DNA of 64,000 nucleotides from Penicillus capitatus (GCA_965649825.1 OZ287697.1:583635-647634); one strand, 5' to 3'. Counted from the first letter of the stretch, positions 8,526-62,207 are shown. A program made the numbers and translations. Notes: generated by a model from the letters alone, not told the origin.

Positions 8526-9837
8526 ATGGGTTTCAACGGACTGATCGTCCATTCGACAAGAGGATCTTTTTTGCCTCTTCCTCGCAAGCCTCATCGTTCA
8601 CATCCTCAGCCGACCACACGTAAATCTGCCTTTCGACACGCTCAGGATGTGTTTGATGGTCGCCTGATGCAGGCCGGTGTGTGAGAGTCCACGCAGCAAA
8701 GAAAGAGAAATTTCTGTGGGAGGCATTGCGAGAGGCGATCGACGAAGAGATGGAACTCGATCCGAAAGTTCTCGTTATTGGTTGGAGCTTCCTCCCGCCT
8801 TCCATTTTACACACCTTGCGTCAATGCAGGAGAGGATGTGGGTCATTACGGTGGAAGTTACAAAGTCACATATGATCTTTACAAAAAATACGGCGAAATG
8901 CGTCTCCTCGACACCCCGATCTGTGGTGATGTCCTCACAGATCTTAATGCCCGGATGTGACGTTAGCTACTGACAGAGAACAGCTTCATGGGGATGGGTA
9001 TTGGGGCTGCTATGACAGGACTGCGTCCCATTGTGGAAGGCATGAACATGGGATTTCTCTTGCTCGCCTTCAATCAAATTTCCAACAACAGTGGCATGTT
9101 GCACTACACATCCGGCGGGCAATTTAAAGTTCCCATGGTGATTCGTGGCCCAGGAGGTGTGGGACGGCAATTGGGTGCCGAACATTCACAGAGACTCGAA
9201 TCATACTTCCAGTCCATACCTGGTGTACAGCTCGTGGCCTGCTCGACTGTCAGAAATGCAAAGGCCCTTCTCAAATCTGCCATCCGCAGCGATAATCCCA
9301 TCATCTTCTTTGAACATGTCCTCCTGTACAATCACAAGGGCGAAACAGAAGAAGGGTATCTTCAGCCATTAGAGAGAGCAGAGGTGGCGCAAGAAGGAAC
9401 AGATGTGACGATTCTGACCTACAGTCGCATGCGTTATACTGTCCTCCAGGCAGTGCAAGAACTGAAGAAGAGAGGCATCTCAGCAGAGGTCACTTCCCAA
9501 TAGCTTCCACTTCATTTTGTTCAGGCGTGCCTCTTAGGTCGTCGATCTCATCAGTCTCAAGCCGTTTGATATGGAGACGGTAGCGCGAAGTGTGAGAAAG
9601 ACCCGCAAAGCTGTCATCGTGGAGGAGTGCATGAAAACGGGAGGCATTGGTGCGTCACTCTCTGCGGTGATCTCAGAGAGCCTTTTTGACGACTTGGATC
9701 ATCAAGTGATCCGTTTGAGCTCTCAAGACGTTCCGACTTCCTACGCCCGTGAACTCGAAGCAGCCACTATCGTGCAGCCGGAAGACGTCATCCATGTCGT
9801 TGAGAAGATGATGGGGGTGACAGCGCACACCGTTTAG
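8526..9837 (+). CDS. pdhB: Plastid pyruvate dehydrogenase E1 beta subunit
   Basis: [19 protein letters not shown]|[35 protein letters not shown] and [11 protein letters not shown], with a transit-peptide-like N-terminus from ATG 8526. Confidence 0.96.
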
Positions 9838-9844
9838 TGTCTTT

Positions 9845-30767: not shown

Positions 30768-33700
30768 TCACAGGGATTCTGATCGGAACTCAGAGATTTC
30801 AATCTCGGCCTGACAACTCGATCCTCCCACGTCGATGCAATTTATACTGGTTTGGCCGGAAGACGCACATTTGATCTTCAAGTATGTCACAATGATGCGA
30901 TACCATTCCCATTCTTCGCAATCCACCTGCAGTGCCGACTCCACTTCCAATCTTATCTGCTCAAATTTAAACCATACCAACGCGAAGAGAAGAACAGCAA
31001 GGAACACAACATTGCCACACAGCAGAAACACGGTAAGGATCATTTGGATCACATCGTTAATGAATCTCTCCTCGTTGAGAATGAGCCCACATAGGAAAGT
31101 AAAAAAGCTCACGGACAGAGACACGTTTTCGAGGAAATTCAATCTCTTCAGTTTATGGTCGAATGGATTGAAATGCGTTTGCAGAAATTGGGCGATGGCG
31201 ATAACCGCCAGTGCCAAGAGTCCTTGAAGGTTGCCGCCGAGTCTGTAAGCAAAAACAATGATAATGGAGAGAGCAGCTTTTCTGAGGAGTATCAAACAAT
31301 CCCAGTAGACATACTTCTCGTCAAAGACCATAAACACAAATCCCATCGTTTCTCGAGTCCACTTCCACTGCAGTCTGTTCTGCTTGCGAGCGAATGCCAG
31401 ACACACAGCCAGTGCCACTGGGAAAGCGATGGTAAAGGCCATCAATGGAACGGAGACGACCAGGATATAAGTGAGATGCATGCCGGTGTAGCACTTCACA
31501 GATGTGTCTTCCATCCAGTATCGATGCGTTGCTTCAACATCGTCTAACTTGATGCCATCGTGGACCTTGGCACAGTTGAAGGCACCGACGGCTGTCGTTA
31601 CCACGGTCAAGTAGGAGTGGTAGGCGACAACGATGTGTGCCAGAATGATTCTCCTCAGCAGTCTTCTCCAGTTCCTCTCCATCTTTGGCTCAGCCAGACA
31701 TAGCGATGCAGACATGAGAAGAGCGACGAGCTCGGGAGATAAGGCAACGATGATCTGACGCAGAACGGTGCGTGGAATGGCGTTCCCAGAAGGCAGCACA
31801 CAGTCTAACAGAAAGGAGGACCCAATGAAGACAGCACCTCCGACGGAATCTGCAGAACGCATGCGATTCAGAACACTCTTCTGCACTGGAGAGTCGACGC
31901 ACCATAAACTTTGAACAGAGTGAAGGCGGGCACGCTCCATGACACATCGAAAGAAGAGGCGGCGGCAATAGTCTGAAGAAGATTAATGGTGATCTATGGA
32001 CGAACGCCACTCATTGCTGTACAGATATGGAAAGTACTTGCCTTGAGTACACCCAGAAAATTGCGCTTTGCTTCAACGGCATCGCCGACCTTCAAACTGT
32101 TTGTCGTTCTGTTGTTTGAACGAGCAGGTTTTCTAGTGTCAATGGTCACGGTGTGATCTGAGTTCTTGCACTTTCTACGTGGGCCTAGCGTTCTTCTGTT
32201 TGTCCCATGGACACTCAGGCTTTTCATTCTGATCTCCATCCATCCCTTCTCGGCGTGCAGTGTCTCTTTGATCGGCAGGTAAGCTAAAATCAACTGAAAT
32301 GCTAAAACGGCGATCAGTCCAAGCACAGCAAGCGGCAGTGATATACAGGATTCACATTCGAAGCTTCCCAACCGGCCGCTTGTCGTGGTACAGGATCCGC
32401 ACAGTGGTCCTGTGTACTCGTTTGCACATTGACTAGCTCGGTACTCCGTGACACTGCTCTCACTAAAGTTACACGTCATTTCATCAAGACTTGGATCTTG
32501 TAGCATATTCCATCCCGTAAAATTGCAGGCTTCTTCGTAAGCACATCTGTCCATCTGATGTGAGCATGGAAAGGAGTTCCAGTAACCTTTTCGCGGAACT
32601 GTAAAGTTTGTCCGGCAGTCTGCATGTTCAGGACATGCTTCACAATCTGTCTTGTTCAAATCAAAAGAATACTGATTCAGTTTGCACGGCTTGCAAAACT
32701 CTCCTTCCTGGACAGATTCCTCATTGATGGTACAATTGCGGACATTCACTCTGAGAGTAATGTCTTGTTTACGCTTGCATCCATCCACGTGAAGGTTAAG
32801 GTCATACGATCCCGGTTTGACATAACGCTTTCCAACGGTTATGTTGCCAGTTCCCGAGGAGATATCTTCCTGCACTCGATTCTCAAGAAAATGCATGGTG
32901 GAGTCCGTCTCTGGTATAGAAGACAGCTCAGCATACACAGGCTCGTCATAAACGTCTTCTGCGGAATCGGGAAGTCTCTTCATAGACGATCGATTATATC
33001 TGGCCACAGAAAAATTGTTCCCGAAGGCATCGAACATCACGACATTCAACACTGGCAAATCCTGTCCACTCTTCCATTCCTTAAGCGTGGGGGTCGGATC
33101 GTCGAAGAAAAATGCGTGTAGACGATCAAGCTTGATGAAGAAGACACAGAACCCAGTGGATGGACTTGCCAGATTCTCTTCATAACCTCTTGAAATGGTG
33201 TTATTGAAGAACCTGCTGTTTTTGAAAGGATTGTAAGGAGGCCTCTCCATTGTCTGACAGTTGAACTTGCTTCCTGCAATCTGTTTCGCCGACTCTCCAT
33301 CTATCTGCAGGAGAGAAGGATCTTCAGTGAATATGCCAGCACCAGAAGACCAAGCCGTGTTGTTCCATATACTGCTATTCCAAATTTCGACTCTCGAGCT
33401 CAGTTTGTTGCCTGTGGGGACACTGTCAGACTTTGACGAATTTCTGTTGACGTGGACAGTGTGCTTTCCCATGTCGACGATGTCCATAAGAGAGATGGCT
33501 CCTGTGACAAGACCCTTCGACAGAGCATGAGAGATTTGAGAGATTACCGCCAATCGATGCATTGTTCCGGACAAAAGCCGAGTTCATGATTTTCCACTGT
33601 CCTTCATTGACCACACGGCAGAAGGAAAGGCCTCCACCAAAGGTCGCTTCGTTGTCATGAAACAGACAGTCTTCAATCGTCAGATTGCTCTCTGCGTAGA

Positions 33701-35943
33701 TATGAATGGCTCCGCCTGATTTAGCTGCATGGTTTCCATTGAACGTACAACGACGGATCATCGCTGTGCAGTTTTCGATGCGTTCATCGTTCTCCTCACA
33801 ATTGACATTCACGGCACCGCCTCTGACCGCCGCCGAGTTCTCGGAAAACTCCGAGTTTTGGATGGTGATGTTGGACATGGCCTCTATGGCTCCGCCGCCA
33901 TATTGGCTCTTGTTCTTGGTGAAAGTGCAATTCTGAACGATTGCTGGTGTTTTCTCGGAGAGTATCCCTCCAGCTTCTCCATCGCATGCACAATTGTTCC
34001 GGAATGTGCAGTTCGTCACATCCAGCTGATGGGCATCGCGAATACAGACAGCAGCCCCACTCTTCCCTCTGTTGCTCTCGAAACTGCTGTTATTTAAATG
34101 GACATGGACGCTCTTTCCCGTCACAAGCACCGCTCCACTACTGTGCTCTCCTGTATTATTGGCGAACTCGGAACTGTCTATAGCGAGTCGTACTGTTGGC
34201 TTCCTCGTAACACGGACATCTTTGGATCCGCAACGGGTCTCTGTGTTATGGTACTGTCCTTCCAAGAACACGGCGCTCCCACCATCGTTTTGATCATGAT
34301 TGTTCGAGAATCTGCTTCCAAGGATATGAATGTCGCCACTGGTCCGGTGAAAAGACAGAGCTGCTCCTCCGAGTCCAGTATTGTTCTTGAAAGTGCAATT
34401 GCGCATCATAAACTCCTTGACATGGCTGTTGATCAATCCGATCGCACTTCGCACATGTACATCATCAGGCATTGACCAGGACGCAGTATTATTCGCGATG
34501 TGACAGGAGTCGAAGAAAATCGCTCGACGCTGTATCTTAGAAAAATAAACTGCGGTCCCGTACATCGCCTGGTTCTCCAAAAACACACAATCCTTGAATT
34601 CTATACGCTTTGTCATTTCTAGTCCCCCTGAAGTATTTTCCAAGTTCCCATAAAAATAGACAGCCGCGCCAGATCCACGACCTCTCATGACATTTTCGGT
34701 AAAACTGCAGGAGGTGAAGGACACGTTGCGAGGATACCGCATATCTACTGTTCCTCCAAAGTCACCAGCATCATTCTCAGAGAATTCAGAAAAAGCGATC
34801 TCTGCTGAAGAGCTTTCTGTGCCGATAGCTGCACCGTAGCAATCGCAAGAATTATTTAAGAAACTTGAATTCTTGACAGTCAAGGAAGATGATTGGACTT
34901 GTACAGTTCCCACATTAAGTCCATTGTTGTTTGCAAACACGGAATCGAGAATACGCATTTCCCCGCGTCTCAGCTTCAACACAACTGTCTTGAGGTTGTC
35001 CATCGCTGTTAGGTTTTTAACAGTCGACGACGAACCTTTAGGAAAATGAAAGAAAGCACCCTTCTCAGAACTTTCCCATTCCCATCTGTTTGCGATCACT
35101 CTAACATTTGTCAGCGAATTGTTCTTCGATAAAGATGATGGACTCGTATATACGTTGTCTTCAAAATGGACGTTATGGAATTCGACCTCTGGATAGCAGG
35201 TCTTGTTACGGATAACCACCCCCACAGATCCTCCCCAATTCTCATTTCGTTTGAAGGACACATTGGATAGACGCATTTTGTGTTCTGATGATGATTTACG
35301 ACTGCAGTTACCGGTTTCGATAATGCCTGCAACGGCATTCTCGTCCGATGATAGACTGCAGTTCTTGATGATAACATTCTTCAGTATGAAACTGCCGTTC
35401 CTGCAGAATCGGCGCATTCTACTTGGTCGACAGAGGAGAGGAGACACCACTCACTTCACGAGAAAAAGACGGTCCCCTCTGGGACACCGAAATTGCGCTC
35501 TTTTGGCCGAGTGGCTGTGGTTAACATTCAGCGCCCCGTCGATCGTCACATGTCGACGAATGACGAGGCGTTTGGAAGGATGGATCTTTAGCGACGGCTT
35601 CAGAGAAATGGTGTCGCCATCCTTTGCACCATTGAGAATTTCCTGAATTTCCGTGCTATTGTCTTCCGTGACCAACAGCGTTATGCTGCCGTCTTCGCGG
35701 GGTACCCTTCCTACGTTACTGGACTCAGCGAAGGAACCTAAAACACCACGAACTCGAGTCAGGTTATTACACACTCCGGTATCGCTGTGCAGGAAACACC
35801 GAGCTGCTGTGATTCAGTATTGCGCGAATTTCTTTCGCAATTATGCGCGTACTTTGAGTTGTCTCTTGGGCGACAACCCATTTCGCCGAGGAAATAATCA
35901 AACACAGTGCCACAGCACATAGATGCATCTTTCGTCTATCCAT
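30768..35943 (-). CDS. Large surface or membrane protein: signal peptide, GGA(I/V)/FxxN parallel beta-helix repeats, Cys-rich repeats and a multi-TM C-terminus
   Basis: MHLCAVALCLIISSAKWVVAQ is a signal peptide. FxxN...GGA[IVL] motifs repeat. CKPCKLNQYSFDLNKTDCEACPEHADC, YTGPLCGSC and YWMEDTSVKCYTGMH precede several hydrophobic helices (YWDCLILLRK). Confidence 0.85.
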
Positions 35944-41006: not shown

Positions 41007-43041
41007 TCAGTAACGTCCACGAAATCCTCTTGGTCTTGTATTCGCAAAATCTTGTCGTGGTCTGTTATGGTTCCATGAGGAGCGTCCATTCCTGCCTCCG
41101 TGACTTCCGTATCTCCAAGAGGGATGTGGCATGTCTCTTCTCCCTTCACGAAACATTGGAGGATCGGGACCCCTTGGTATATATTGCAATCTCGGTAGAG
41201 ACGTCACGATTTCCATCGCACATCCATCCGAAGCATCTTTGTAGGCATCGAGCAATCCACCCACCTCATCTTCGTGCACATCGAATACCACGCCTGGCGA
41301 TCTGTCTAGCAACCGAATACCCTTGAGCTCTGCATTCCCTCCCGCCTCTTGGATCTGCCTCTTGGCCCATTCGATCGTGATGGGACGTTCAGATGTACAG
41401 GACCATTGAAGTGTGACATGTTGTCCCAGATGCAGCAGGAGAGATCGCTGTTGCTGTTTTGCATAGCCAGTGATGCACGCCAAACAAGTGGCGACTAACT
41501 CAGCGGGATCTTCCCATTTCTGCAACACCTTCTTGGCAGCTTCTTTGAACATATGTCTCTTGTGCCGCTTCACACCTTCCATCACTTCCTCTGCCTTCTT
41601 CGTGGCCCCTTGGATCATGTCCTGCATTTGTGGTGGGTCTATCCGTTGAAATCGAATCCTTCCTGTGCTTTGAATTCTTCTCAGCAGAAACTCTGTGGAA
41701 CGGGAGATGACGCAGATGCAGACACCCGTTCTCTCTGCTCTGCCTGTTCTTCCAGAGCGATGTACATAGGATTCGACATCTCTGGGCGGCGTGGTCTGGA
41801 TGACCAATCCCACTTCTGGGATGTCCAATCCCCTCGCGGCAACATCGGTCGCGACCAAGACATCGATCTCTCCAGATCTGAATGCAGCAAGGGTCATCTC
41901 TCTGGTCTTCTGTTGCAAGTCTCCATGAATCGCACGGGCTTGCAGAGATGTTGCAAGTGTTTCGGCGACTTTGTCGCAGTTGGCTTTCGTATCGACAAAC
42001 ACAATCGTTCTTCTGCCATTCGCATAGCACTGAATGAGATCTGGCAAAATCGAAATCTCCATATAACGATCGACCATCACACACTTGTGCTCGACACAGT
42101 TTGTTGCTTGACTGCTCTGATGTGTCATGAGATCGATGGTACGATAGTCTGATTTACAGAACTTCTGTAGAAGGCCTCTGACCCATGGAGGCAGCGTTGC
42201 ACTGAAGAGCAGGGTTTGGATGTGACCTCTGCTGCCCACGGCATTCAGAATAAACTCAACGTCCTCGACGAAACCCATCTGCAGCATTTGATCACACTCA
42301 TCCAAAATCTGAAACCTGTCATCGACACACACAGGAAGAGGAGGACAACACGATATCTCTGTCTCTACTTTAGATTCGAGAAATCTAGGTTGCCTCTGTT
42401 GATGTGATCTTTGATGCGACCTGGTGTTCCCACCAGGAAATCGATCCCTCTACGCAAGGCACGTTCCTGCTCGTAGTATGGATGGCTTCCGTAGATGCAG
42501 CAGGTGATAACGTTGCCCGCTTTGCCAATATAAGCACATTCCGTTTCCACCTAATACCATCATCGGTCACTCTCACTCTTTTCACACATCTTACCTGTTT
42601 GGCAAGTTCTCTTGTCGGTGTGAGACAGAGAACAGAAGGTCCACGACCCGCAGGCCGGTTGGCATCGTCTTTCATCAAGTGTTCCATGATGGGCAGCACA
42701 AAGGCAAGAGTCTTGCCGCTGCCTGTCTTCGCTCGTCCCACCACGTCAAAACCGTCCAGCACCAAATCGAATGTCTGGGCTTGGATAGGGAACAGACTAC
42801 TGATGCCTTTCGCTAACAGCAACGACTTAACGCCATCGGACAGACGAAAACGATCGAGAGCGTCGGGATCATTTTCCGGTGAGGTGGGAGGAGATTCGAC
42901 GACGGCTTGGTAGATTTCGTCTCGATAGGTTTTGCGTTTTTTCGTTTCGGGCATTGGCTCAGGGGACGGCGCTTTCGAGATCTTTTTGCGCTCGTTTTTC
43001 TCTTTTGGTTTTTGCCCTTTTCGATCGACATCCTGCGTCAT
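41007..43041 (-). CDS. RH7: DEAD-box RNA helicase RH7/DDX21-like with GUCT-like C-terminus
   Basis: [63 protein letters not shown] and an RGG-like tail. Confidence 0.93.
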
Positions 43042-56090: not shown

Positions 56091-57139
56091 GTAAGGGTTA
56101 TCGAAGAAACTGCCAGCAGCTATGGAAGGTACGTTGAGGGAGAACGTAGAGCGTTCTCTGGCATGATTCGCACGCGGCTCTCAGGCAATCTTTGTCGTCT
56201 GTTGCTGTTTGGCCGTAAAGCCGAAGCAATGCCATTGACGCGAAGCCTCAGTGACCGAGGCTGCTGCGGCGATTCACCTGCAGATTTACATAATAGACAG
56301 TATCAAATCGCGACATACACTTGCTTCGCGGTCGGCAAATGGGCGCGCATTCGAATGCTCGGCCTGTACCACACATTAAGAGGAGCATCCAGGTTCATTA
56401 AGCACGTAAGAGTTGACGGGTCGCTCGGAAGGAATCGACAAAAACGCGATGGAAAGAAAAGGAATGCACTTGGACGCAATCGCGTCACATTGTTTTCGGT
56501 CACTCGGCCGCCGTCATTTCAACTTTTTTCTCAGAATCCAGTGACAACATGAAGCAGAAGATGTTGGAAGAGTCAGTGAAAGTGTGAAAATGGTGTGCGC
56601 GATGCAGACGAAGATGACAATGATGGTCTGAAAGGGGCCTCTCAAAAAGGAAAACGGCGTCAAACCACGCTTTGAAGAAAACCGGCGTCATTCGCCGTTT
56701 GTTTTTAATGGACTTGCCGATGCAATATGTGTCGAAGGTGCCGAAGTGGTTGTCTATGTGATCATCTCTTGCGGCATCGAGACCATGTTCGGACAGTCAC
56801 ACTCGAAAGCGCCTTTATTCTATGGGGTCTGACCGTCATCGATGCATTTCGTGTTTGTTGTTTCGCCTCCGAAGAGTGCGCGCTCAAGTAGCAGGATCGG
56901 AAGGAGTTATTCAGCCTTGGTGGTCCGTCATGTAGAATTGTACGGCAAAATTCTCCACGTCAGCGTCCATTCAAGCCGTTTTTTTTTCGTTTTTGTTATG
57001 CGTCGATCGCGACGCCGTCATGATGGTTTAGAATTCTTGCACGCTGGCGAACGTCCAATATCCATTTACTCGTTTGTTTGTTCGTTTGTGAAGGGATTGC
57101 GGCCGAAGATGAAGGAGATGACAGAAATCTAAAGTATCT

Positions 57140-57470
57140 TTTTTGTGTCAAATCTTCGGTTTGCGATCTTGACAGCGGTTTTCATTCTTCGCCGCTCCAA
57201 TTGTACAGGTCGTGCAATGTATTCGCTTGGTTGTCGGCGATCTTTTATACATGGTATACACTCCTCGCGTTCGTCATGGCTCCAAAAACTGGGGAGCCCG
57301 TACGAACGGTCGTCAGTCGTGTAACGAAGTCAATAGCCGCGTTGGACCCACTAAGTGGGCAGAGAACGCCGAAATCACAAAAACAGAAATGCAAGAACAG
57401 TAGAGAGGTGGACAGCCAAAAAACTCGAACTCGCTCTGCCAATCGAAATCACTTCCGTCTGCCCCAGGAC
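57140..57470 (-). ncRNA. Candidate Fanzor omegaRNA scaffold overlapping the ORF 3' end
   Basis: Four consecutive stem-loops (57347-57359, 57268-57308, 57189-57240, 57146-57174) lie directly 3' of the RuvC-III/KPFIRP end, where TnpB/Fanzor omegaRNAs are known to lie. The boundaries are inferred. Confidence 0.55.
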
Positions 57471-60400
57471 GAATGAATGGCTTTTTCCGTCTTAGCCCAT
57501 AAAACTTCCTGATCGTCAAATTGAGCATGTTCATCGCCGCATTCTCATCCCTGTCTACAGCCAGCTTCTTCCGTTCAGATTCGCTTGTGGCAGGATGACA
57601 TCCCGGACAAAAGAGAAGACGAGTACTTGCCCGCGTATTACCGTTCTTCTTTGGACATCTGATTTTCACTTTCTTTAGCTCTTTGTTGCCACAATTTGTC
57701 GAGCAACACATCTTGGACGTGTGGTATTCGTCAATGAGAGTGAGCATCACGGGTCCAACACGATTCGTCTCTATAGCATGGGCTCTGCGTTGCACGGCTG
57801 CGTTGATGGCTTTTGCGAAGGCTGTGACGGGAGCTGCTTTGGAACCACGTGAGGCTGCGGCAAAATCGCCGTTTCCAAACCCCAAAACCATCGGCCGCAT
57901 GTCAGTCCGTGATCGGAGGTCAAGAATATTGTTTGCCAGTCGAGCTAAGGCTCCGGCACGTAGCCGATCGCTCCTCATCCTCATACGTGCCTTGAATGTA
58001 TTCGTTATGTACGCATTGACGAGAACGGCGCCGTGCTGTGCCTCGGTTTTCATGACCAATTGAACGTCCAGAGATTTTGCTGCCTCGATCTTCGCGTTCT
58101 CCGCCTTCACAAGACCCGGAGCCATCGACTTGTTGAATAGCATTCCTCTGCGACGCCTCCAACGATAGCCTTGGTCATAGTACCATCGGCGACGTGTATA
58201 CGTTCCAGTTATGGCCTCATCTGGTTTGAGTATCGTGTTCGGATGAGCTTTCAGCTCCAGTTCTTCCTCCTTTGATGCCTCTGTTATGGCAGTTAATGAT
58301 TTTGGCAAAGATCGCTTGGTCCCACGGCTGTTGCAATGTATTGATGCCATAATCTCTCTTCTAACTCCACGTGCAATGGTCGTTTGGCCTCTTTTGCGGC
58401 CTTTCCTACCATTTCTTCTTGTTGTTTCTTCTGGCCCTTCTAGTGAAACAGTCGATGCCGAGCGTTCTGTCCCATATTGCATCTCTTCCAAGTCGCCGCC
58501 CGTTCTGCCATGTTCGTTCCGGGTTTTGGCTTGAGAATGATGCCCACTTCTGCAATCGCCTGAACCACTTGGCGGTAATCGGTATTCATGCCCCAGAGTA
58601 ATGAGCGCACTCTTCGTCGTTGGTATCTGTCGCGTATAATCATCCCCGGGGGGCTAGTCATCATGACAGCGTCGGGAGGTCCGCGAGAAGGGATATCTTC
58701 CGGAAGCGGCGCTACTAGGTCAACACTAGCGTCTTCGGAGCTTCGCTGCGAGTCGTATATTCCCGCGTTATCGATGATCCGCTCTGCGCCTCGCTGTTGT
58801 AAATCGGAGGTCTCCGCCTGACGAAATCTGTTAAGGCGGTCTTCGAAGGAGGGATAGAGAGGCGCGTAGAGGATGGTGGCGCGTTGAACGTTGTGTTCTG
58901 CGTCGTGGTCCGCCAGGATGCAAGGTAAACAGAAAGTCTTAAAACACGTGTAAAAGACAAGAGTCCGTGCATAACCCCCCATTTATACCGCCCTGATGTT
59001 GCGACTCCACGAAGAAGTGAATCATCGCGCCACCCGAGCCAGAGAAGAGCGTCCCAAGACACAGTCGACAAGACATGCAGCGCCCCTGCGCACAGCTGAC
59101 CCTCACAGAACAAGACAACGTCACATCGCTTGGCGACAGTATCTTTGAAAATGCATTTCGTCTGTGTCTTCCTTCGACTGGTGGTTTTTTCCTTACGTTC
59201 TTGTTGAACGACCTTCTAACCTTTGAATTCGCTACTCGCCCAGTTGTCGTGGCATATCTTTCGTTCGTAGCAATTCGTATGCTTGCGGCATCTTCGGCCA
59301 GCATTTGAAATGCACGAGATGCTGACTCAGGCTGGTTGCTCGGACATTCTCTTTGTGCAGTCTCAGTTGGTCCGGCTTGCATTCGTGGTTCTTCCTCTAT
59401 CTCTGTCTCCCTGGCCCAAGTGACAATTTTTGCTCTTCCTGGATCTAATCCGACGAATATTGGCCGATCTTCGCATTCCTGACGAATGCGTGCAAAATCA
59501 GCCGCCGTGCAATAATACTCTGATTCCAGGTAGGCCGGTATTTTCTCTGACTTCTGTTCTTCAATCTTCGGTTTTTTGCTTGGGCGCTTTCTTTCTATTC
59601 TGGATTTCCTCGGCAATGGGAGCGTTGTTTGAGTCAAGTCTATGTCAGGGAAAACGCGGCTGGGAAGCACATTGTCTGCGTAGCTAACATTGAGGCAGAC
59701 CCGGACGCCATCCGTTGTGGCGGACTTCACACTTCCGGCTTCTAGGTGCTTTCTTTTGCCACGAATCCGCCATTTGCGGCGCCTTGATCTGATCTTTCGT
59801 GCCTTTTGTCGTCTACGCCGCATACGTTGACGTTTTCTTCGCAGCTTGCCCATGATCTTTCGCCCGAGAAAGAGCCCTTTCGTGAAAGAAAGCGTCGTTT
59901 GCTCGCGTAACTTGGAGAATGTCCTTTTCTCCATGTAATCTTGCCAGAGTGGTTTTCTTCGTTGCTTCGGACTTCTCGGGTGTTTACTCCCGCCTTCGCA
60001 AAGATTCTGTCGCTTTTCTTCTTGTCTGTCGATGAAATTCTTCACTGAAAACCCAACGGACTTGAGGTATTGCTCCGGATCGTTTTTGTAAAGCTGGCTT
60101 TTATGGAGATGTTCTTCGGAGTCTCTCAGCTCCCCTTTGCAGACGAAGAGATTTCTCAGCACTCTGGCGTCCAGCGTACAGTGTTTTCTGGCGAGTTTAG
60201 ACATTGGCATGACCTCCCGCCGCAAGACTCCGATTCTTGCAAAGAAGATATGGAGGCTGAACGATTCAGGCGTAACTTTCTCGGCCATTCGAGGCAGTGG
60301 CTTCGACAAGTCGCTGTGGAGTGTCCTTCGGATTAACTCAATCTGTTTCGCCGTGTCATCTTTCAGGCCGATATCGTTTTCCGGGGGCCACCTTCCAACG

Positions 60401-61421
60401 AGTAGCTTCACCGTCTCCTCTCCTTTGCGAGGCTCGAGTGAACGAACGTAGCTCTTCGCACATCGGATCGTGGAACTCCTGATGAACAGATCGATATTCA
60501 CCAGCATTTGTTTCGCTCCATATTGCAGAACTCTCCACCAGCCGTCCCGGAGCATCAACTTTGCGAACTCGGGTGATGGCTTCAGATGTCTTAGCGAGGC
60601 CTCGTGCTCTGCAAAAACAGCGTCAACGTCATCCGCAAGTCTTTCTTCGTTCTCTTTCTGCAAGTCCTTTTCATCCCTATCCTCTTGAGTTGATCTGCTT
60701 TTCCCCTTCGTCGTTCCCTTCAAGATGCTTCCTCTATAACCCGCACCATACATCTCTGGCATCAATACTCGCTGCAGAAAATTTATGATGTCTTGATCTG
60801 TCTCTTGTCGCGCTCTGGCATTGTTAATTCTTCGAACGACAAGGCGATGGCAATGCTCCAGAAACGTTGTCGGTCTTCTATCTCCCTTCGCTCTTGCATC
60901 CTCTGGATCCGGTGGCTGCCAACGCGGAGAGATTTTCAGTCGCTCTTTTGGTCATTGATAGGGCAGTGTGAAATGTCGATGCACATATGCATTAAGAATA
61001 AACCATGCTCGATATCGAATCTTCGAGTATTCGCACACCAGTCGGTGAATCTTTTCCCGTCTCGATTGTCCTTGAATAAGAGTGAAAAGGTAGCAAGATA
61101 AAGTCCTGAACCGGGTGGGGCACAGTGCCTCAAGGTCCTCAGGAGCTGCTAACTTGTGCACTTTGCAAAGCACAGAGGCTTCTCTCTATGTGTAGTTTTG
61201 GTAAACTCCAATTCCGTTTCGGCGACCCTATTCGCCATGCCTTCGCGAAGGATCTCAAGGAGCTGTTCGCGCTTCGACAATTTTCTCTGCACGCAGTCGT
61301 TTGTCTTCTGTTTTCGCGACGAACGCTGACTTACGTTTCTGGCGCCATTTTGTTGGACGCCTCCCTCTCCGCCCCTTTGTTGTGCGTTGGCAGGAAAGAC
61401 ATCATCCGTTGCTAAGTTCAT
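57313..61421 (-). CDS. Fanzor1: Fanzor1 (TnpB-like RuvC nuclease), split into segments: either spliced or partly pseudogenised
   Basis: RuvC-I IFVGLDPGRAKIVTW (Asp 59443-45), GTYTRRRWYYDQG, VLGFGNGDF...APV, RuvC-II IDEYHTSKMCC (Glu 57727-29), Zn-finger CCxxxC/CPGC, RuvC-III VDRDENAAMNML (Asp 57547-49) and a terminal RP. N-terminal FRTLSCYL...VCEYSKIRYRAWFILNAYV resembles Fanzor1 N-termini. Confidence 0.9.
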
Positions 61422-61703
61422 TGAACGCACTGCCGTTTTATCGAAACCGTAGAAAAATTCCGCGTGCTCGACACGAACAACCTAAAGCGATTCTGTCAAC
61501 GCTGTCGTTTAACGTGGCTTTAAAAGATTGATGGTGATATGGCCCTGATGTGACGGGCATTCGGCAGAAAGAGGTGACGGTTTTCATTGGTGTATGCTCT
61601 TTCACCTTGTTCGGAATCACGTCTTGCGTGATTGCGGAACAAAGATGATTTGAGACACAACGAACGTAACGGGTCACGTTGCGGTCGGGTAGGAGAAGAT
61701 TTT

Positions 61704-61941
61704 TGGGGATGGGTATTGGGGTTGCTATGACAGGACTGCGTCCCATTTGTGGAAGGCGTGAACATGGGATTTCTCTTGCTCGCCTTCAATCAAATTTCCA
61801 ACAACAGTGGCATGTTGCACTACACATCCGGCGGGCAATTTAAAGTTCCCATGGTGGTTCGTGGCCCAGGAGGTGTGGGACGGCAATTGGGTGCTGAACA
61901 TTCACAGAGACTCGAATCATACTTCCAGTCCATACCTGGTG
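61704..61941 (+). pseudogene. pdhB: Duplicated pdhB exon fragment (copy of 8989-9225)
   Basis: Direct alignment of 238 vs 237 bp shows 4 transitions and 1 inserted T (cccatttgtgg vs cccattgtgg) that frameshifts the copy. Confidence 0.97.
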
Positions 61942-62207
61942 CTCTTGCAGTGCGTCCTGTATCCATGGACAGCCGTAAAGGTTCTTCATATCCAACATGC
62001 GTTTTATTCTGGACACCATTTCCGTCGGATCTTCGACCTGCGTGTGATGTGTGGTTTGAAAGATCGGGAAGGAATGATGCAGGTACCGAGATATCCACTG
62101 CTTGCTTCTCTTTGGCAACGACATAGACTGTTTCCATCATCTGCATACCGATGCCTTTCTGCTGATAGCCAGGTAGGACGAAGATCTGACCGATGCGATC
62201 GCGATGC
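61942..62207 (-). pseudogene. HAT1: HAT1 (type B histone acetyltransferase) gene fragment with retained intron
   Basis: [37 protein letters not shown]|[20 protein letters not shown] matches HAT1 motif A and DITVEDP. The 49 nt GT-AG intron is at 62038-62086. Neither end of the gene is present. Confidence 0.85.

Follow-up and report, generated by a model that had tools for sequence, protein, structure and literature searches.

We analyzed a 64,000-nucleotide stretch of DNA from Penicillus capitatus (GCA_965649825.1, OZ287697.1:583635-647634), referred to here as the window, in which a gene of the Fanzor1 type lies on the minus strand between positions 61421 and 57313. Judged by its profile and predicted-fold matches, this gene is a member of the eukaryotic TnpB-like RuvC nucleases of the OMEGA family. 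An initial annotation had described a locus of about 4.1 kb that runs from an ATG at 61421 to a stop codon at 57313. Both codons exist, but the span between them is not one reading frame. It is composed of a 93-amino-acid (aa) open reading frame (ORF) in another frame, a conserved piece of 77 codons, an in-frame TGA, and three adjacent minus-strand ORFs of 608, 180, and 392 aa, which we call ORF A (58939-60765), ORF B (58440-58982), and ORF C (57313-58491). ORFs A and C share a frame, which differs from that of ORF B. The features of the locus are listed below, with the matches to the hidden Markov model (HMM) of the family and their expectation values (E).

61149-61430, minus strand: upstream 93-aa ORF, which holds the ATG (61421-61419) and is in a frame different from that of the conserved pieces
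60967-61170, minus strand: conserved N-terminal piece, HMM positions 70-137 (hmmsearch E 4.7e-13)
60952-60954, minus strand: in-frame TGA that separates the N-terminal piece from the main ORF
59383-60951, minus strand: conserved N-terminal two-thirds, with REC-like helices, WED with the TDG motif, and RuvC-I ending in GLDPGRAKIVTWARETEIEEEPR; HMM positions 180-520 match 60651-59383 (E 6e-48)
59443-59445, minus strand: RuvC-I catalytic Asp of the DPG motif (GLDPG, 59451-59437), an invariant alignment column
59139-59382, minus strand: first part (81 codons) of a 218-codon stretch, whose last 5 nt (59143-59139, GATAC) are the upstream target-duplication copy
58628-59138, minus strand: 511-bp dispersed repeat, 5'-TGTCGCC...GCGACA-3', resembling a solo long terminal repeat (LTR) or a miniature inverted-repeat transposable element (MITE); four other copies with sharp common ends
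58623-58627, minus strand: downstream target-duplication copy GATAC, from sequence comparison at the insertion site
58213-58622, minus strand: second part (137 codons) of the 218-codon stretch, in frame and unique within the family, with basic runs, e.g., RRNGRKGRKRGQ
57460-58212, minus strand: conserved C-terminal third, with a helical linker, RuvC-II, the alternative catalytic Glu (Ealt), a C4 zinc finger (TNB), and RuvC-III; HMM positions 520-759 (E 1e-48)
57727-57729, minus strand: Ealt, six residues ahead of the first zinc-finger Cys (from the alignment)
57598-57708, minus strand: C4 zinc finger, with CCSTNC (57708-57691, a CX4C first knuckle) and CPGC (57609-57598, the second knuckle), from the alignment
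57547-57549, minus strand: RuvC-III catalytic Asp of the RD motif, the second Asp of DRDENAAMN (from the alignment)
57313-57315, minus strand: stop codon TGA, read from the sequence

An exhaustive HMMER search with ORF C returned 117 matches, 27 of them at E<=1e-10. Most were proteins of 600-850 aa whose C-terminal ~250 residues aligned to residues ~90-345 of ORF C. A family profile built from 65 full-length matches was found to match three colinear blocks of the locus in the same frame, 61170-60967 (E 5e-13), 60651-59383 (E 6e-48), and 58212-57460 (E 1e-48). When the locus sequence was aligned with 64 full-length relatives (alignment A1), D440, G573, P588, E622, and T625 were invariant, and T350-D351-G352, C629, C634, C662, C665, R681, and D682 were conserved in at least 90% of sequences. 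The three residues of the D/E/D catalytic triad were present in 65, 65, and 64 sequences, respectively. The motifs on which the initial annotation was based (GLDPG, IDEYHTSK, CCSTNC, CPGC, and DRDENAAMN), as well as the ATG at 61421-61419 and the TGA at 57315-57313, are on the minus strand at exactly the positions it gave. Their occurrence is far beyond chance, given that the residues fall in these invariant or at least 90% conserved columns and that the two larger blocks match the family HMM so strongly. The alignment also bears out the proposal that the catalytic triad and the zinc-finger cysteines are retained and, as read from its sequence, the encoded protein has lost none of the residues that characterize an active Fanzor.

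Searches with the A1 profile matched the Fanzor1 proteins of Parasitella (1.3e-10) and Spizellomyces (3.9e-9) and a mimivirus Fanzor2 (2.7e-6), followed by TranC, TnpB, and Cas12m. Scans of domain libraries with ORF C by itself gave only sub-threshold matches, to Pfam Cas12f1-like_TNB (E 0.013) and NCBIfam guided_TnpB (E 0.0012), and nothing was found when the ORFs were searched singly against the PDB. The Pfam TNB domain, though weak for the locus protein, was above the cut-off in three of its relatives (P0002, P0008, and P0009). An AlphaFold2 model of the conserved core had a mean predicted local distance difference test score (pLDDT) of 76.7 and a predicted template modeling score of 0.74, with pLDDT ~90 across the RuvC part. 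In this model, D440 ends the strand 435-441, E622 is just after the strand 615-620, and D682 starts the helix 681-697, and the blocks that hold these three residues have pLDDT values of ~94-97. When the core model was compared with the PDB by Foldseek, ranks 1-7 were all Fanzor1 structures (SpuFz, PpFz, and GtFz; E 2e-11 to 2e-7), with template modeling scores of 0.58-0.60 (up to 0.60 on the target). These were followed by Cas12 variants, Fanzor2 (rank 11, E 6e-4), and TnpB. The best profile and structural matches are, therefore, Fanzor1 RuvC nucleases and not members of a non-RuvC family.

The locus protein also carries the signatures by which Fanzors have been defined. Fanzors have a DPG at the RuvC-I catalytic Asp (Yoon et al. 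2023, PMC10711439), which here is GLDPG with an Asp column invariant in 65/65 sequences. They have an inert Gly or Pro in place of the canonical RuvC-II Glu, and Ealt is situated ~45-50 residues downstream, six residues before the zinc finger (PMC10711439, PMC10530073). In the locus protein, the RuvC-II strand ends in the invariant G573, and E622 follows 49 residues on, then YHTSKM, then C629. A C4 zinc finger (TNB/OrfB_Zn_ribbon) is present between Ealt and RuvC-III, with a first knuckle of CX4C, not CXXC. The RuvC-III Asp of Fanzors is provided by an RD motif 5-50 residues past the zinc finger (Bao & Jurka 2013, PMC3627910), and R681-D682 is 17 residues past C665. The same authors gave a spacing rule, D-X(125,275)-[TS][TS], for the distance from the RuvC-I Asp to the TS before the zinc finger (Bao & Jurka 2013, PMC3627910). 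At the locus this distance is ~575 when read straight through and ~403 without the repeat, both outside the range, and 185, inside it, when the 218 codons are also removed. The WED TDG motif, the REC insertions, and the fold and profile scores (Fanzor1 1e-10 versus Fanzor2 3e-6) all place the protein nearer to Fanzor1 than to Fanzor2.

Comparison with the solved Fanzor1 structures, SpuFz1 of Spizellomyces punctatus (8GKH/9CEU), PpFz1 of Parasitella parasitica (9CF0), and GtFz1 of Guillardia theta (9CER), revealed that the predicted overall fold matches over the full length, with a profile-to-sequence match from the WED TDG motif to the C-terminus. The DPG, the Ealt within DE[FY]xTS, the C4 zinc finger, the R/N-D of RuvC-III, and a conserved RP..SR tail are shared. 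The locus protein differs from these in its 12-13% identity, its CX4C first knuckle, its 218-codon hairpin insertion, and its interrupted frame. Prokaryotic TnpB (ISDra2, 8EXA; ISFba1, 8IAZ) and Cas12f share the RuvC and zinc-ribbon (TNB) core but were weaker structural and profile matches. TnpB has D-hydrophobic-G and a canonical Glu ~50 residues before the zinc finger, whereas the locus protein has DPG, a Gly at that position, and Ealt. Unlike TnpB, it also has the large REC and WED additions of Fanzor1.

Why, then, does the locus appear so long? Among the 64 relatives, the spacing from the RuvC-I Asp to the catalytic Glu is 167-222 residues (median 182) and the total length is 568-860 aa (median 765). 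The raw spacing at the locus is 572 codons, and these are made up of 172 codons of the 511-bp repeat with its 5-bp target duplication, 218 codons that are in frame and unique within the family, and 182 codons, which is the family median. The family profile skips precisely 59382-58213 (1170 nt). This gap had also been considered as one long intron or a generic insertion, a view that was superseded once the 511-bp repeat with its own 5-bp duplication was recognized. When the element and a single duplication (516 nt in all) are removed in silico, ORFs A and C join in one open frame of 1040 codons, from 60951 to the stop codon at 57313. The first ATG of the N-terminal block is at 60762, and the fused, pre-insertion protein would have 977 aa from that ATG and more with the N-terminal piece (977-1117 aa or more). 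A protein of this length surpasses all 64 relatives as well as the ~800 aa given in the literature for large Fanzor1s. The conserved part of the protein has ~760-840 aa, versus 568-860 aa in the relatives.

The repeat is a discrete unit (59138-58628). The contig that carries the locus is 1.46 Mb long and belongs to the ENA metagenome assembly ERZ25074695; the four other copies of the repeat are on other contigs of this assembly, each within unrelated flanks, and have 76-82% DNA identity to the window copy. Across all five copies, pairwise identity is 74-97% and the ends are sharp and common. The 5-bp duplications are perfect for the copy in the Fanzor gene (GATAC) and for three others (AGCAT, AGGAT, and CGTTT), and match at 4/5 positions in the fifth (AGATC/GGATC). 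The window copy differs at 25 of the 348 positions at which the other four agree, a private divergence of 7%. ORF A enters the element and stops at 58939; the final ~66 codons of ORF A come from the element, as do the initial ~118 of ORF B (58982-58440). The remaining ~62 codons of ORF B are an out-of-frame reading of the downstream duplication and the second part of the 218-codon stretch. ORF B has four relatives with 65-84% protein identity, all on other contigs of ERZ25074695. Since this protein identity does not exceed that of the DNA, ORF B is not a genuine gene.

TG...CA ends together with 5-bp duplications are the classic signature of an LTR or solo LTR. The element has TGTCGC...GCGACA ends with short inverted termini, target duplications in the 4-6-bp range, and dispersed copies. 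An alternative explanation is that, instead of a solo LTR, the element is a non-autonomous DNA transposon (MITE) or is introner-like, creating introns upon insertion. The short terminal inverted repeats (TGTCGC/GCGACA), the discrete size of ~0.5 kb, and the dispersed copies with target duplications are as expected of such elements. In addition, the 3' end together with the base that follows it spells ACAG in two of the five copies and ACAAG in another two, similar to host acceptors. The LTR signature argues against this explanation, as does a terminal inverted repeat of just 6-7 nt. In the case of an introner, the GT at element position 2 resembles a donor but carries a pyrimidine at +3, in contrast to the donors of the five homology-verified host introns (GTAAGA, GTAGAG, GTACGA, GTGCGA, and GTGATG, with acceptors ending in YAG), and splicing at that GT shifts the frame by 5 nt. 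We consider a MITE or introner unlikely on this evidence.

The 12-kb loci that surround the other copies (L005-L008 of ERZ25074695) contained no two such repeats flanking gag-pol, and just a partial tandem piece was present in L007. These loci are from related algal genomes at differing depths (39-41x and 11-16x); the pair L006/L007 represents a single locus (97% identity), as does the pair L005/L008 (85%). An orthologue of the Fanzor C-terminal ORF was not found in L005-L008, and the Fanzor gene may for this reason be lineage-specific.

The 218 codons that flank the element (59382-59139 and 58622-58213) are absent from all relatives and are located in the beta-hairpin that follows the RuvC-I strand. 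No homology of this stretch was found, whether to the family, to other parts of the protein, or to Pfam. It has no in-frame stops, compared with 6 and 7 in the other frames, and its in-frame codon-usage score was the best of the three, though this scoring was trained on ~2800-3000 codons, separates coding from non-coding DNA weakly, and is used as supporting evidence only. Among the encoded residues, R, T, E, A, S, and G are abundant and aromatics are scarce. In a second AlphaFold2 run that included the stretch, pLDDT was <50 at 460-479 and 502-654, with the flanking RuvC near 90. The alignment carries no information for these residues, which makes the low pLDDT weak evidence of disorder, and we consider the stretch probably disordered. 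The stretch is bracketed on the minus strand by a 10-nt direct repeat, GAGGAAGAAC (59397-59388 and 58269-58260), each copy of which is read in frame as EEE. Such a repeat is shared by chance in ~2% of comparable zone pairs in the window, and GAGGAAGAAC might mark the origin of the insertion. An internal duplication at the locus was searched for and not found.

These results bear directly on the possibility, proposed in the initial annotation, of one giant Fanzor1 of ~1370 aa that extends from ATG 61421 to stop 57313 and is greatly expanded between RuvC-I and RuvC-II. The motifs are in the right order, and an in-frame insertion of 218 codons remains after the element is removed, giving the long pre-insertion protein described above. 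That amount of expansion stands. The span as a whole does not, as it shifts frame near 61186, is interrupted by the TGA at 60952, and contains an ORF A that ends inside the repeat. Furthermore, 172 of the extra codons are repeat DNA and target duplication, the repeat being seen at four unrelated loci, the other 218 extra residues are predicted to be disordered and not a new domain, and the rest of the spacing is the family median. A single intact protein of this size is, in our judgment, highly improbable. On the predicted structure, the description of the protein as expanded holds solely for the 218-codon insertion, which is probably a loop and not a new domain.

The N-terminal end of the gene is also discontinuous. 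The N-terminal piece (60967-61170) does not have a Met of its own, a TAG is situated just before it (61188-61186), and the ATG at 61421 belongs to the upstream ORF in another frame (61149-61430). This suggests either a frameshift lesion or an unrecognized exon structure. The 93-aa ORF may be exon 1 of the Fanzor1 gene, but it had no significant match to the family HMM, and a GT-AG scan found no short intron that links it to the next piece without loss of conserved residues. The TGA at 60952-60954 is either a nonsense lesion or sits within a short intron. A candidate GT-AG intron of 69 nt (60984-60916, GTGCAT...TTGGCAG) spans it and keeps the frame, and its size fits that of the verified host introns (44-66 nt). 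The frame break near 61186 and the TGA may be additional lesions.

Overall, we favor the view, at a probability of roughly 70%, that the locus is a Fanzor1 copy, left stranded among host genes, that was inactivated recently, not an intact giant. The 511-bp repeat inserted into the coding frame, within the lineage-specific and probably disordered loop of 218 codons. This insertion split one 1040-codon frame into the ORFs of 608 and 392 aa, with the 180-aa ORF being largely element sequence. By analogy with characterized Fanzors (PMC10432273, PMC10530073), the ancestral protein would have bound an omega RNA specified close to the 3' end of its gene and presumably cut double-stranded DNA flanked by a target-adjacent motif, using its single RuvC site. 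Enzymes with the rearranged Glu are reported to lack collateral activity, and the ancestral enzyme probably lacked it as well.

Several observations weigh against this view or limit it. Both halves of the gene are stop-free apart from the TGA at 60952-60954 and the break near 61186, and there is no stop codon in the 1040 codons of the fused frame despite the 25 differences out of 348 in the element. If that divergence arose after the insertion and the gene is dead, several stops are expected. The 1040 stop-free codons therefore indicate either that the insertion is recent or that the gene is under selection with the element spliced out, and frame-compatible GT-AG pairs able to remove the element (a span of 0.9-1.1 kb) do exist. 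The label of the element as solo-LTR-like is taken solely from its ends, size, and 5-bp duplications. No terminal inverted repeats were found within 56500-62000, no second Fanzor copy was found in the window, and an omega RNA was not identified: there was no Rfam match, a tRNA scan was negative, and the fold of the 3' flank (57480-57100) had a z-score of -0.7. The locus differs in these respects from the solved Fanzor1 systems, as both the omega RNA and the inverted repeats were looked for and not found.

The stop-free frames could be explained if the gene were functional, with the element and part of the flanking lineage-specific stretch spliced out as an intron of ~0.9-1.1 kb and the TGA removed within the 69-nt intron, leaving an active Fanzor1 of ~800-900 aa. 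The absence of stops on both sides of an element with 7% private divergence is consistent with this, as are the intact catalytic and zinc-binding residues and the position of the 69-nt intron across the TGA. Many GT-AG pairs preserve the frame, e.g., GTAAGG at 59196 or GTGCAT at 59315 with an AG at 58279-58216, and Fanzor genes are known to gain introns (PMC10530073). However, an intron of ~1 kb would be an outlier beside the five verified host introns, and inspection of the sequence showed that exact GT-AG excision of the element is impossible in any register of the target duplication. The conserved N-terminal piece also lacks a Met and has no plausible join to the upstream ATG ORF. We regard a live, spliced gene as possible, though rather unlikely. 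With respect to the splice sites themselves, a de novo matrix derived from ORF-merging candidates converged on noise, and the five verified introns were used instead. An alternative genetic code was rejected, as the stops inside host genes sit in short GT-AG introns.

A further alternative is that the gene has been domesticated, as a single-copy host Fanzor1 that has lost its transposon, in which the basic, disordered 218-residue insertion in the RuvC-I hairpin is functional and the element acts as, or within, a new intron. We think this improbable. If it were true, the insertion could serve in, for example, nuclear import or partner binding, and the locus would represent transposon-driven intron gain inside the gene for an RNA-guided nuclease.

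The inactivated copy that we favor can be compared with Fanzor loci described elsewhere. Like the Fanzor1 genes of other green algae (CRe-1/2/3 and CrFNuc of Chlamydomonas reinhardtii, and those of Volvox and Chlorella), it is in the nuclear genome of a member of the Chlorophyta. Green-algal Fanzor1 genes carry introns, and copies are often truncated or degenerate; the elements are multi-copy and are carried on Helitron2 transposons with recognizable ends (PMC3627910, PMC10530073). In contrast to the Helitron2-borne genes, the locus gene is without recognizable transposon ends and is single-copy, a count that is based on searches of the window and of protein collections. A word-indexed search of a 90%-clustered protein collection with ORF C returned just the protein itself, and the protein collections held no other protein with >39% identity to the locus protein. 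Its nearest relatives are from Caulerpa and uncultured sequences, at <=39% identity. In S. punctatus, Ty3/Gypsy elements have been found inserted in or beside Fz genes (Saito et al. 2023, PMC10432273). The disruption at the locus is of the same retroelement type, but here there is just a solo-LTR-like remnant of 511 bp, whose retroelement nature we infer from its ends and 5-bp duplications.

The Fanzor1 subfamily to which the locus protein belongs is divergent, has proteins of ~570-860 aa, and is represented in Caulerpa lentillifera as well as on metagenomic contigs that are gene-dense and lack introns. Three of the relatives are Caulerpa proteins, and others are on such contigs with a D5-like primase or a DNA methylase. 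Two of these (P0011, L002 6671-8959; P0010, L003 608-2974) are on gene-dense contigs of 57% guanine-cytosine content that have no apparent introns. Neighbors there include a D5_N primase-helicase, a DNA methylase, and a large S8 peptidase. Because of these neighbors and the gene-dense, intron-less layout, the contigs may stem from large DNA viruses. Another relative, P0054 (C. lentillifera g5462.t2, 1435 aa), has a gene model that combines a Fanzor1 body with four CAP (cysteine-rich secretory protein) domains and is probably a merger of two genes. It shows that the subfamily is present in several copies in Caulerpa.

The neighbors of the Fanzor1 gene are intron-bearing host genes, for a neutral ceramidase, a DUF1997 protein, a PPAT-like protein, a cyclic nucleotide monophosphate (cNMP)-dependent kinase, and a DEAD/GUCT helicase, in agreement with the view that the gene is set among housekeeping genes. 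The best named relative of the helicase (41007-42332) is from Caulerpa lentillifera (53%), followed by those from Neomeris, Chlorella, Picochlorum, and land plants. These sequence relationships support the host being an ulvophycean, Caulerpa-related green alga and the window being part of its nuclear genome. Together with the profile and Foldseek results, they support the proposal of a Fanzor1-type gene in a green alga. Self-comparison of the window revealed one further feature close to the Fanzor1 gene, ~280 nt upstream of ATG 61421:

61704-61941, plus strand: 238-bp fragment of a pyruvate dehydrogenase E1-beta exon, 98% identical to 8989-9225 (plus strand), with one 1-bp insertion

The real E1-beta gene is at ~8680-9840. 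The fragment looks like a captured gene fragment or templated filler DNA, and is a hint that a mobile-element or repair event brought in or remodeled the 6.4-kb block (56.2-62.6 kb) that separates the host genes. Elsewhere in the window, three adjacent long ORFs (390, 526, and 674 aa) were observed at 30768-35450 on the minus strand. The 674-aa ORF matches the Chlamydia polymorphic-membrane-protein repeat (Pfam E 2.5e-8), which would be an unusual large repeat-protein gene for an alga.

For genome scans, the locus illustrates that a large spacing between RuvC motifs can reflect a nested repeat and not a new protein architecture. Its importance would rise only with transcripts demonstrating continued expression and splicing of the interrupted gene. 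As we interpret it, the locus illustrates how Fanzor genes can decay in place through the insertion of repeat elements, and it adds to the family a divergent Fanzor1 lineage from siphonous, ulvophycean green algae whose relatives are found on compact, possibly viral, contigs.

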